A DNA stretch of 64,000 nucleotides from Macrostomum lignano (taxonomy: Eukaryota): positions 323,013-387,012 of the forward strand of contig NIVC01000997.1 of assembly GCA_002269645.1 (NCBI GenBank). Direction: 5' to 3'. A program made the position numbers and the translations under genes. Positions 44,568 to 52,470 of the stretch are shown here, in pieces. Each line of letters starts with the position of its first letter. Position 1 is the first letter of the stretch. A model generated the notes under the pieces. The model searched no databases and was not told the origin of the DNA. It was given only the letters and a program-made list of their open reading frames with translations.

Positions 44568-47500
44568 TTAAGCGGAGTCATCGTCATTTAGCCTGTCTTT
44601 GAGCGTCACGGACACCGAGTCGCCGTTCACCGGTGTCGAGCCGTTCGCATTGTCCATAGCAAGGTAGTTACTGAAAGCCGGATTCTCCAGCGTCATGACC
44701 GGCTGCTCAGCGGACTCCAAGTGAGACGGCACGCTGCGCCTGCGGTGCACACGAACTACGTAGAATGTGGCACCAGCCAGGACCAGCAGCACTGGAATTA
44801 TCCACAACACGTGCACCGCGCCGCTGTTCCAGAAGTTGGCGCCCTCTGTCGGCTCTGTGGCAGGATAGTTTCCAATGGCTTTGCAGAAGTACCAATACCT
44901 GCCCGTGCCAACCTCTGTGCGCATTCGCAGCGCCGAGCCAGTGTCGAATAGCAGACCGTAGTTGTTGGGGCTCTGCTTCGGATGGTCCGGCCACCAGTTC
45001 CTGCGAGTTCCGAATCGGTTTAAAGTTGAAAGGCACGGATTAAAGTTGAATTCGAGGATTCATTCAAAATTTTTCACAGATATGCTTTACTCACGGTACA
45101 ATGTTTATTGTTAATCTATGGAAAGCCCATTTCAAAAGACCATCGTGTCCTTCGTCGCGGAACAGGCCAATCCAGGCGGCCTCCACGTTGGAGCAGTATT
45201 GGCAAGCATTCCAGTCGGCTTTGATGCCCCAGTTTCGAGCTGAGTAGTCCACTAGCCACTCGAGCTCGGACTGGGTCTCAAGCCAGACTAGATCGCTGCT
45301 TTCGGACACGGAGCGGCAGGCATCTCGCGCCGACGACCAGGTGTGGCCTTGTATCGGCTTGCGCAGCGTATAACAATTACCGTCGTACTCAATCCACCGA
45401 TCGCCGGACTCTGGGCAGGGCCCGATTGGCGCCCTCGTTATGCTTGTCGGATTGGTCTCCGTGCTGGTCGAAGGCTGCGTTGACGACGTCGAGATGTAGC
45501 GATAATTATACTTGCAAAAGTACCAGTAACTGTCGCTTAGTACTTCTGTTCGCAAGTAAAAGCGCGAGATTGTCTCGTGTATCATTACGAAGTTGTTAGG
45601 CGAACTCTTCGGGTGACCGAAGTACCACCAGGATGACCTGTGGGTAAGGAATGTGAGATAGTCTCATAGACACAGCTATTGTACACAATTTTTTGTAAGT
45701 AAACGTTGCATAGAGATCATGTGAGGTCTTACAAATCAAGCTGATTTTTTGAAAAGTCCCTCTTCCACGTAAAGTTTCCTGTGGAGTCGCGGAACAGGCC
45801 AATCCAAGCGCCGGCGACGCTGGTGCAGTTGAGGCACTGCTGATAGTCGGCCCTCAGTCTCCAGTTGCGAGAGTTGTTAAGTAGCCAATTCAGTTCGGCC
45901 TGACTGCTCAACCAGAGTAGTTCAGCTCGATGGTCTTGCGCTTTACAAGCCGTCAATGCACCTGACCAAGTGACACCTGACGGGCCCTTAGCCAGTGTGT
46001 AGCAGTAGTCACCGTATGCTGTCCAATCGGTGCTGACGCAGGGGCCAGGTGGGAACCGAGTTGGTCCCGGGGTTGAACTGGTCGGCCTTTCGGTAGTGGC
46101 GGTACTCTCCGAGTAGTCTATTTTGCAGAAGTGCCACAACACCCTATCAAGTGTCTGCATGCGGAATCTTAACTGAGATCCCGGGTCGTAAATTATCCCA
46201 TAGTCGTTGGGCGTTGGCAGAGGATCATTGCCCCACCAGCTCCTGGAAGTTTTTTGTTGCTTTTGTAAAGGTGCTGATGAACTAACTAACTAACTAACTA
46301 AGTAACTAACTAACTAACTAACTAACTAACTAACTAACTAACTAACTAACTAACTAACTGACTAACTAACTAACTAACTAACTAACTAACTAACTAACTA
46401 ACTAACTAACTAACTAACTAACTAACTAACTAACTAACTAACTAACTAACTAACTAACTAACTAACTACTAACTAACTAACTAACTAACTAACTAACTAA
46501 CTAACTAACTAACTGACTAACTAACTAACTAACTGACTAACTAACTAACTAACTAACTAACTAACTAACTAACTAACTAACTAACTAACTAACTAACTAA
46601 CTAACTAACTAACTACTAACTAACTAACTAACTAACTAACTAAGTAACTAACTAACTAACTAACTAACTAACTAACTAACTAACTAACTAACTAACTAAC
46701 TAACTAACTAACTAACTAACTAACTAACTAACTAACTAACTAACTAACTAACTAACTAACTAACTAACTAACTAACTAACTAACTAACTAACTAACTAAC
46801 TAACTAACTAACGGCAATTTACTAGCTCGTAAATGCACTGCAACTACATCTGCCCAACAAAACTTAAAATGAATCATTTCAAAAACGTACAACTCAACAG
46901 TAACTTCTGTTTGATCGTGGGCCCACTTCAGCTTGTTGTCTTGCAGATCTCTGTACATGCCAAACCAGGCAGCCTCGATTCTATCGCAGTTGGTGCACTG
47001 CCTCCAGTCCTGCTTGATGCCCCAATTCCTGGCCCCGTCCCGGATCCAGGCTAACTCTCTGTCGCTTCTGACCCATAGCAAATCCGCACTGCGACTGAGA
47101 CAATCAGCTCTAGCGTCCGAGTAGATCCTTCCACTGCTGCCTTTCACTAGTAGGTAGCACGAGTGCTCAAACTCCTTCCATTGGCTTGATGGACAGTTTC
47201 CAAGGTATGGAGTTGTTGTTGGAGTTGTAACTCTGGTAGCAGTTGTGGTACTTGGCTGCGGAGTACTAGTTGTTAACCTGGGAGTGTTGGATGGTCCAGT
47301 GTAGTCCGAGTGGTTAGTCTTGCAGAAGTGCCACAGCCTGGTGGACACGATCTCAGATCGAAAGCGCAGCTGCGAGCCCGTGTCGTACAAGAACACATAG
47401 TCCGCTGGTGGGTCTTTTGGGCTGCCCAGGAACCAATCTCTGCGTGAAAAATAATATAATACAATCTATAGATAGAACAAAGCAAGTAAATGTAGTTGTA

Positions 47501-50500: not shown

Positions 50501-52470
50501 AGCAAAGTATCTGCGATCCCTCAGAAGAATTATTCAAAAAATAACCGGGAGTTAAGTTAACTGAAAAGCAAAAGCAATAAAAACAAATGTAGCAAAAACA
50601 AACAACTTACAAGGTCAGTTCGTTCGCCATTCCAGTCTTGAGCCACTTAAACTCGTCAGTAGCCACATCCCTGTACAATCCGATCCAAGCTGCTTCGACG
50701 CCTCTCACACAGTCTGTGCACTGATCCCAGTCCTGCTTGATGTTCCACTGCCTGGCACTGTAGTCCTGGAACCAGTTCAGCTCATTTTGGTCGGAGAACC
50801 ACAGCAGATCGGAGCCTGCGTTCCGACTTTGACAGTCGGTCCTGGCTTCATCGAAGCTCCTACCAGTCGCTCCTTTGACCAGAATGTAGCAGAAAGCTCC
50901 GTTCTCGATCCATTCGGATGAAGGACAAGCTCCTTCGTACGGCGTCGTTGTAGGCGCGGAGGTGGTGACGGAGCTGGTTGACGGCTGAGTCGACGTAGAC
51001 GGCGGAGTCGTGGCTGTGCTTTCTCTGAACCGGAACTTGCAGATGTGCCACATCTTTGACCCGGCGGTCTCGCTCCTCACACTAAGATCGTTGCTGTTTC
51101 CTGTGTCGTACAGCGAAGCAAAGTCGTTCGGTGTAGCTCTAGGGTGACCGGTGAACCACCGTCTGAAATGGACAATGTCAGGATTTCAGATAGGTAAGTT
51201 ATGCTGCTATTGAAGCAAGGTAATGAGACACAGTTTGTAGAGACACTGACACTGCAGACTGATCGATGCCGGTCTTTGCTCCCCAAGTCCACACGTCTCC
51301 GGTTCTTCTCAGCGACATCCAAGCTGTAGCAGCGGACTGGCAGTCCTTGCATTCAGACCAGTCTCTCTTCAGGTTCCATGCTGATTTTGAGTTGTCCATG
51401 ACCCAGGCGGCCTCGTCTGCCGTCTCAATCCACAAGAGTCCGGCCTTAGAGCTCCGAGCTGAGCAGTCTGCTTCGGCCTCATCGACGCTACGACCGGACT
51501 CGCCCTTGACCAGCAGGTAGCAGGAGTCGCCCTGCTCGGTCCAGTATCGAGTTGGACACGGACCGAGGTACGGAGGCAGCGTTGTAGTCGGCATTGGGGT
51601 GGGGGTTGTGGGATCTCTGTGCTGCACTTTGCAAAAGTGCCAGAACTTTCTGTTGGCCTCTCTGGTGTCAGTCCGGTACCGTATACTTGATCCGGTGTCG
51701 TCTGCTAGGATGTAATCTAGCGGCGTGTCTTTAGGCTGGCCAAAGTACCAATTCCTGAAAGAATCGTAAAAGCTTGTATTTACGCCAAGGTTTACGTAGA
51801 TTGCTGGTTTCAGTTTTAACTGGAAAAGCAAAAATGAGAATTTACTTAACATTTCGCCGTCTTTAGTTAATATTTTTTGCATTTTTCGCTAATGCTGTTA
51901 CAGCTAGAACACCTACTGTCCATTTCATTCACCTAACAACTTACAAATTGATTTTCACCGCTTGGCTGTCCCTAATTCCCTACTGTCCATTTCCTTCACC
52001 TAACAACTTACAAATTGATTTCCACCGCTTGGCTGTCCTTAATTCCCTACTGTCCAGTTCATTCACCTAACAACTTACAAATTGATTTCCACCGCTTGGC
52101 TGTCCCTTATCCAACGGAAAATTCCCAAATCGTCTCTGTAGGCACCGATCCAGGCGGCTTCCACACGTCTGTCACAGTCGGTGCATTGCGCCCAGTTCTT
52201 CTTAATGTTCCACGCCCTGGCCTGGTAGTCCTCAAACCAGCTCAGTTCGCTGTCTGTCGAAATCCACAGCAAATCGGCGCCGTTCGCTCGACCCTGACAG
52301 TCTGTCCTGGCCTCGTCGAAGCTCCTACCGGTTGTGCCATTGACTAGCAGGTAGCAGAATGCTCCATTTTCAATCCAATCTGACGATGGACAGCTCTGCT
52401 GACAGTGAACAATTTGGCAAAGCAGCGCTGCTAGAAGCAGCAACAGCAGTTTGAAGTTGTCTTTTAGCAT
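44568..52470 (-). CDS. Type I membrane receptor with 9 tandem atypical C-type-lectin-like domains (mannose-receptor-like architecture), about 1667 aa
   Basis: Exons 52470-52079, 51754-51251, 51162-50611, 50161-49649, 49232-48729, 48640-48137, 47439-46891, 46242-45733, 45637-45095, 45000-44568, all phase-2 introns, frame open throughout. Signal FKLLLLLLAALLCQIVHC; repeats CP..W....CY.L....A...C....LLW....AWIG...W..FCK with S/T/P linkers; TM VLWIIPVLLVLAGATFYVV; tail with ENPAF. Confidence 0.88.
46280..46812. repeat. (CTAA)n microsatellite, about 530 bp, in CTLD-receptor intron 7
   Basis: Direct observation. Confidence 0.98.
47516..47750 (+). mobile_element. tRNA-derived SINE family B, full head plus conserved central domain
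   Basis: A box TAGCCTAGTGG and B box GGTTCGATTC, then CTTGAGCAAAACACTTAACTC..CAGTTCACCCAGCTGTAAAATGGG, which resembles CORE/Nin/Meta-type central domains. Other copies occur in the window. Confidence 0.8.
51912..52107. repeat. 67-bp tandem triplication spanning the exon 1 / intron 1 donor of the CTLD receptor
   Basis: CCTACTGTCC starts at 51912, 51979 and 52046; each unit contains CTTAC (GTAAG on the minus strand). Confidence 0.9.

Follow-up and report, generated by a model that had tools for sequence, protein, structure and literature searches.

The mannose receptor family (MRC1, DEC-205/LY75, PLA2R and Endo180; group VI among proteins with C-type lectin-like domains [CTLDs]) comprises type I membrane proteins with 8–10 CTLDs in tandem, one membrane-spanning helix and a short tail that bears an endocytosis motif. 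Most CTLDs of this family do not bind sugars. Here, we describe a gene of the flatworm Macrostomum lignano whose predicted product has a similar layout. The gene, Mlig014256.g1, lies on the minus strand (ATG at 52470, stop codon at 44568) of a stretch of 64,000 nucleotides (nt) of contig NIVC01000997.1 (positions 323,013 to 387,012 of the forward strand; assembly GCA_002269645.1); we refer to the whole stretch as the window, and coordinates are window positions unless another locus is named. The product, a predicted glycoprotein, has a signal peptide followed by nine tandem non-canonical CTLDs on Thr/Pro/Ser-rich linkers and then by a single transmembrane helix with a short tail, and this type I layout, seen in the translation and the alignment, bore out a preliminary description of the locus as a nine-domain lectin-like receptor. 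That description also proposed that interchangeable exons could make the gene a combinatorial recognition receptor. Our analysis points instead to what is probably a constitutively spliced multi-CTLD membrane receptor, with an exon symmetry that derives from one ancestral intron and a domain number that evolves in DNA.

Two domains that precede the CTLD array in the mannose receptor family, the N-terminal ricin-type cysteine-rich domain and the fibronectin type II domain, were not found in the flatworm protein by a Pfam search, and its signal peptide adjoins CTLD 1 directly. Its linkers are long and mucin-like, its CTLDs have a CxxC pair ahead of the WIGL strand but no C2–C3 disulfide, and its tail holds ENPAF, a putative motif of the NPxF type, where the mannose receptor family has FxNxxY.

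The intron layout of the flatworm gene also differs from those of the multi-CTLD genes with which we compared it. A mannose-receptor-like gene of a sea star has irregular intra-domain introns, for example between the WIGL motif and the next strand, and some exons that straddle two domains; the regularity of one intron per domain is not found in this gene, the sole multi-CTLD comparator with split domains that was mapped. An octocoral "C-type mannose receptor 2-like" protein (XP_028395542.1) likewise has tandem near-identical CTLDs and Thr/Pro linkers. By contrast, it follows the classical correspondence of exon and domain, in which a single exon encodes each CTLD and the linker has a small exon to itself, so that skipping would drop whole domains and create no chimeras. 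Neither the mapped octocoral gene nor the mapped sea star gene shares the intron site of the flatworm CTLDs. Vertebrate natural killer (NK)-complex/CLEC genes also have introns inside the CTLD, which is encoded by three exons (PMC3322459); they differ in having two introns per domain and in encoding single-CTLD type II proteins. Repeat arrays with exon borders inside domains are already known from nebulin and cadherin (Bjorklund et al. 2006, PMC1553488). As in these arrays, the exons of the flatworm gene repeat with the period of the domains but are offset from where the domains begin and end, and the array expanded by tandem duplication; the flatworm gene differs from them in having one exon per domain, a uniform phase 2 and a youngest repeat block whose borders map to linker-coding sequence.

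We built the gene model from the raw sequence by six-frame translation of positions 44400–52600, which gave ten open blocks on the minus strand, and by then choosing frame-keeping GT/AG sites. Exon 1 (52470–52079, 392 nt) contains the ATG, the signal peptide and the N-terminal part (N-part) of CTLD 1 and ends at a phase 2 donor, AATCAATTT followed by gtaagt. Every internal exon encodes the C-terminal part (C-part) of one CTLD, a linker and the N-part of the next, starting with the C-part of CTLD 1 and the N-part of CTLD 2 in exon 2 and ending with the C-part of CTLD 8 and the N-part of CTLD 9 in exon 9. These eight exons are exon 2 (51754–51251, 504 nt), which is 93% identical to exon 5; exon 3 (51162–50611, 552 nt), whose first 157 nt are 98% identical to exon 6; exon 4 (50161–49649, 513 nt), a mosaic; exon 5 (49232–48729, 504 nt); exon 6 (48640–48137, 504 nt); exon 7 (47439–46891, 549 nt); exon 8 (46242–45733, 510 nt); and exon 9 (45637–45095, 543 nt). 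Exon 10 (45000–44568, 433 nt) encodes the C-part of CTLD 9, a stalk, the transmembrane helix VHVLWIIPVLLVLAGATFYVV and a 64-aa tail with ENPAF, and ends with the stop codon. All nine introns are GT–AG introns in phase 2; introns 1–9 are 324, 88, 449, 416, 88, 697, 648, 95 and 94 nt long, respectively. Translation gives 1667 aa without an internal stop, and the sequence equals that of GenBank PAA73711.1 ("hypothetical protein BOX15_Mlig014256g1"), the deposited transcript-based model of the locus, in which all ten exons are joined constitutively. The gene had thus been annotated before, and it belongs to a known type of protein, although it is itself uncharacterised.

In a MAFFT alignment of the nine CTLDs, each taken from its first Cys to its FCK motif, the split codon of every domain fell in a single column (108). 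The rebuilt model and the alignment therefore agree with the earlier claim of nine phase 2 introns at the same point in each domain, and the lengths given earlier for the internal exons matched exactly. All of these exons are symmetric, with the same phase at both ends and a length divisible by 3. Each encodes about 44 aa of a C-terminal domain part, a Thr/Pro/Ser linker of 21–40 aa and about 102–108 aa of an N-terminal part. The exons had been described as joining half-domains; they do straddle two domains, but the split is 70/30 and not into halves. We computed that all 45 donor–acceptor pairs (45/45) give a sense codon and that all 256 subsets of the internal exons (256/256) are in frame and free of stops, in agreement with the claims that skipping any run of exons keeps the frame and that up to 2^8 isoforms are possible in theory.

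The domains were assigned on both sequence and structure. Pfam PF00059 (Lectin_C) scored 75 bits over the whole protein (cut-off 22.6), with no single stretch passing alone, and a profile of the domain compared with the PDB had its best match in DEC-205 (2.6e-09), followed by CD302 (1.3e-07) and many CLEC/NK receptors. An AlphaFold model of domain 9 reached a predicted local distance difference test (pLDDT) score of 91.0 and a predicted template modeling (pTM) score of 0.88. A Foldseek search of the PDB with this model returned 407 matches at E<=0.001, all of them CTLDs, headed by CEL-I, CD23 and dectin-2 (template modeling [TM] scores of 0.66–0.70). Because the model is confident and the search returned CTLDs only, we assign the modeled fold to the CTLDs.

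The alignment showed that C0/C0', C1 (in helix 1), C4 (in FCK, on the last strand) and AAWIGL are invariant in all nine domains, whereas the C2–C3 cysteine pair of canonical CTLDs is absent from all nine. In place of the missing canonical disulfide stands an invariant CxxC pair between helix 2 and the WIGL strand (for example, residues 96–99, QCTDC). The motifs of Ca2+ site 2 are also absent from the nine-domain alignment: there is no WND, and the EPN/QPD position reads QPK, HPR, HPK, SPK or DPL. Judged by these motifs, the label "lectin-like" is justified and the label "lectin" is not. In the domain 9 model, the intron site lies after strand beta2', at about residue 108 of 149 and just before the "W..G.P" loop. 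The N-part thus supplies the scaffold, made up of the two helices and strands beta0, beta1 and beta2, and the C-part supplies strands beta3 to beta5 and what remains of the long loop. The C-part side is the one that binds ligands in canonical CTLDs.

This CTLD sub-type is divergent and narrow, being nearly confined to M. lignano: it matched 15 of 1.84 billion protein representatives at E<1e-10, and M. lignano was the source of six of the ten best matches whose source was looked up. A JGI/IMG metagenome protein (P0014; 148 aa, on a 1099-nt contig) matched the N-part of the sub-type with E=3e-34 and presumably represents flatworm DNA in an environmental sample. At the other end of the protein, RVHRRR comes after the transmembrane helix, and the 64-residue tail has the NPxF-type ENPAF. 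The tail and the helix are kept in P0001 and P0002 save for two changes, a V-to-I in the P0001 helix and a D-to-H in the P0002 tail. In other receptors, NPxF-type motifs recruit PTB-domain endocytic adaptors.

A paralog with a single CTLD bears on the origin of the exon pattern. PAA68155.1 (locus L004) combines fibronectin type III domains with one CTLD of the same sub-type, and this CTLD is interrupted at exactly the same position by an intron that is likewise in phase 2 (...AGC GT/gtgagc...ctgcag/A AGC TGG, with slashes at the intron ends). Because this single-CTLD paralog carries the same intron, the phase 2 intron is older than the CTLD array. The regular pattern is no chance coincidence of nine independent introns, since all of them descend through duplication from a single ancestral one. 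An ancestral single CTLD had one phase 2 intron in the loop after strand beta2', and we propose that the domain, together with its internal intron, was duplicated in tandem with intronless linkers, which necessarily gives phase 2–2 exons made of a C-part, a linker and an N-part. One phase 2 intron per domain combined with intronless linkers yields straddling symmetric exons, so no selection for interchangeability is needed. The uniform straddling exons thus look like a historical by-product of tandem domain duplication. The preliminary description had named such an outcome, in which the symmetry is "just a trace of duplication," as the one that would count against its proposal, and it is the better-supported reading.

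Domain number probably changes in DNA when repeat units undergo unequal recombination or gene conversion with one another, with borders that can fall in linker-coding or domain-coding sequence. The window contains two recent repeat blocks on its minus strand. Copy A (51006–51612) contains a linker, the whole of CTLD 2 and the 88-nt intron 2 and corresponds to nt 143–504 of exon 2, intron 2 and nt 1–157 of exon 3; copy B (48484–49090) contains a linker, the whole of CTLD 5 and intron 5 and corresponds to the equivalent parts of exons 5 and 6 with the intron between them. The copies, about 607 nt each, are 97–98% identical, and the CTLD 2 and CTLD 5 proteins are 99–100% identical. At the sister locus L001, mismatches between the equivalent exons are confined to nt 1–142. 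Since the mismatches stop at nt 142, the block that was duplicated or converted most recently begins and ends within linker-coding sequence and not in introns, and the youngest repeat unit is a whole domain with its intron rather than an exon. Exon 4 resembles exon 5 over its 5' 280 nt and exon 3 over its 3' 255 nt and thus contains a hybrid N-part made in DNA. We also considered whether the window copy arose from a 10-domain copy by a recent deletion of one domain; a recent date was ruled out by exon 4, which is only 86–92% identical to its putative parents.

Four loci of the assembly encode this protein family, and the number of intact CTLDs differs between them (5, 8, 9 and 10), so domain number is demonstrably variable in the genomic DNA. 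The window locus (10 exons, nine CTLDs) and L002 (NIVC01001177.1; 11 exons, ten CTLDs; PAA71257.1, 1848 aa) are annotated in full, whereas the annotated models of L001 (NIVC01000353.1; nine intact exons, eight CTLDs) and L003 (NIVC01000436.1, 6001–9729; six intact exons, five CTLDs) each leave out two exons. The window, L001 and L002 are collinear, with 96–98% identity through both flanks, and L001 and L002 have an upstream MORN/ankyrin/zf-MYND gene in common. M. lignano has hidden polyploidy and a redundant assembly (PMC5730564, PMC10468722), and the near-identical collinear loci fit both. The L003 paralog has a different signal peptide, a stop codon right after its last FCK and no transmembrane segment, and its product is probably secreted. 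Introns of two sister copies contain large insertions, of about 21.7 kb in L002 (14602–36266) and about 2.8 kb in L001 (14505–17280), and the annotated splicing is undisturbed by either. Exons and splice sites are intact at all four loci. The ratio of nonsynonymous to synonymous substitution rates (dN/dS) between the three long copies (window, L001 and L002) was 0.11–0.19, which indicates purifying selection; diversifying selection, as is typical for immune receptors that evolve fast, left no sign.

We next consider splicing, since the deposited models of L001 and L003 join non-adjacent exons. The L001 protein (PAA84928.1, 1144 aa) consists of exons 1, 2, 5, 6, 7, 8 and 9 and leaves out two intact exons (552 + 504 nt) with intact splice sites. 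The L003 protein (PAA83035.1, 535 aa) leaves out two intact exons of 555 + 504 nt and has only three domains. At both loci, two neighboring exons form a near-identical repeat, and the left-out stretch amounts to exactly one of its periods. At L001, the acceptor exon that was used is identical to the constitutive one over the first 79 nt, with two mismatches in 157 nt, and the donor exons differ at three positions within their last 360 nt; at L003, the acceptor exons are identical over the first 127 nt, with four mismatches in 440 nt. The annotation was based on short-read RNA sequencing (STAR, StringTie, TACO) and on BLAT-mapped Trinity contigs. Collapse of a 520–900 nt repeat at about 99% identity would yield exactly the L001 and L003 models, and because of the 79- and 127-nt junction identity with the normal partner, the annotated skips are inseparable from such a collapse. 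The "skipped" exon 3 is present in UniProt A0A1I8GTC2, an older model of independent origin that agrees with the L001 copy at 449 of 449 positions.

Several points weigh against constitutive splicing or against a receptor function. The L001 and L003 joins are in frame and could be genuine exon skipping. TACO was run at an isoform-frac of 0.75, which suppressed minor isoforms, and the absence of a second coding isoform from the protein collection, which holds one per locus, is therefore weak evidence. The canonical sugar-binding motifs are absent from the CTLDs, and full-text searches with the four gene identifiers returned no paper and no expression, localisation or ligand data. A literature search for "Macrostomum lignano" and "C-type lectin" returned only adhesion-protein papers and one unrelated gene, and a word-indexed search with the full protein returned only a single 90% cluster and no RNA-assembly fragments. 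We nonetheless consider it likely that the gene is spliced constitutively. Its product would most probably act as a multivalent binding or endocytic receptor, a functional analogue of multi-CTLD receptors such as DEC-205 and the mannose receptor.

Of the alternatives, the one that survives best is limited alternative splicing that varies only the number of domains, as in the FNIII repeats of tenascin-C and the CCP exons of CR2 and the selectins, with chimeric domains having no role. Phase symmetry permits such skipping, and at L001 and L003 both the exons and the splice sites involved in the annotated skips are intact. The same repeat-collapse confound applies here, however, and the window locus has the same internal repeat yet is annotated in full, so we regard this alternative as unlikely. 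It is distinctly less probable that the joins at the sister loci are real and that skipping of phase 2 exons adds a variable CTLD number and some hybrid CTLDs to the copy variation in the DNA. The annotated joins fuse N- and C-parts that are about 98–100% identical to their native partners, so even if the joins were real, no new chimeric domain would result. The earlier claim that skipping creates chimeric domains holds in that any N-part can be fused in frame to any later C-part, but neither of the two annotated skips produces a new domain.

The preliminary description went further and envisaged regulated or stochastic skipping that would give up to 256 isoforms with new chimeric CTLDs and a Dscam-like diversity of recognition. 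The resemblance to Dscam1-type receptors goes no further than the concept that an extracellular recognition protein may be built from paralogous exons: Dscam has mutually exclusive exon clusters and experimentally observed isoforms, whereas the flatworm gene has serial exons, all of them present in the deposited transcript. The in-frame status of every exon combination and the two annotated skips speak for this proposal, as does an older model with an alternative acceptor at exon 7. This acceptor, at 47421, lies 18 nt downstream and in frame, and it fits the older model P0007 (UniProt A0A1I8GT98, an L001-type copy), which lacks the six residues DWFLGS at the start of the conserved "W..G.P" loop; such a variant would be expected to damage CTLD 6.

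The weight of the remaining evidence falls on the other side. Every exon is present in the deposited models of the window and 10-domain loci, the collection holds one coding isoform per locus, both annotated skips drop a single period of a near-identical repeat, the independent L001 model keeps exon 3, and the copies are under purifying selection, unlike diversifying immune receptors. Four of the nine introns are only 88–95 nt long, and introns this short are usually spliced by intron definition, which favors retention over skipping. The N- and C-parts of a CTLD pack together through beta1 and beta5 and through the C1–C4 disulfide, so the compatibility of parts from different domains would not be guaranteed. 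An AlphaFold model of the most distant chimera, joining exon 1 to exon 10 (N-part of domain 1 and C-part of domain 9; 9-row alignment) reached a pLDDT of only 41.6, compared with 91.0 for native domain 9 with a similarly shallow alignment, a comparison that does not include native domain 1 and is therefore no more than suggestive. A combinatorial-splicing receptor is arithmetically possible but unsupported, and we consider it very improbable.

Least probable of all is the reading in which the locus, as a redundant or decaying copy in a polyploid genome, lacks any specific function and its regular structure carries no meaning, for although three copies are 96–98% identical, a shorter paralog exists and the introns of the sister copies carry large insertions, the exons and splice sites are intact at four loci, dN/dS is low and the gene models are transcript-based.

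Several other repeats lie in or near the gene. A 67-nt tandem repeat (51912–52107, minus strand; 2.9 copies, 95% match) spans the border between exon 1 and intron 1 at 52079 and triplicates the last 27–32 nt of exon 1 together with the GTAAGT donor, giving three equivalent donors 67 nt apart; splicing from either of the last two would change the reading frame. The length of intron 1 varies between the copies, being 324 nt in the window copy and L002, 212 nt in L001 and 189 nt in L003. Most of intron 7 is an (AACT)n microsatellite (46280–46812, about 134 units), which reads (AGTT)n on the gene strand, places dozens of AGs upstream of the real acceptor and differs in length in L001 and L002. Intron 6 contains a tRNA-like stretch, GGGTTGTAGCCTAGTGGTTAGAGCG...GGTTCGATTCGACCC (about 47515–47600, plus strand), in intron sequence kept in L001 and L002. 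Neither an Rfam scan of 44000–53000 (E<=0.01) nor ARAGORN, run over the whole window, gave a hit, so the stretch is not a callable tRNA; it is probably a tRNA-derived short interspersed nuclear element (SINE).

Elsewhere in the window, a GC-rich 20-mer satellite, TCTCTTGGTGGGCGCCCCTG (74 copies at 40593–42079; GC 0.615, AT skew −0.61), has a related 22-mer array 35 kb away at 5226–5808. Further minisatellites lie at 8632–9587, 19636–20712, 37794–38414, 55752–56876 and 57704–58733. This load agrees with the reported share of tandem repeats in the M. lignano genome, which is 15%.

If exon skipping did yield receptors with variable CTLD number and some hybrid CTLDs, flatworms would have their first case of receptor diversification through splicing, the first of any to make hybrid lectin-like domains and a counterpart of splicing-diversified recognition receptors. 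If the gene is spliced constitutively, as we consider likely, its internal repeats can make short-read annotations mimic exon skipping, a practical warning for users of the Mlig_3_7 gene models. The locus would then be a clean case of an intra-domain intron and tandem duplication giving rise to symmetric, domain-straddling exons, with domain number drifting between young homeologs of a polyploid.

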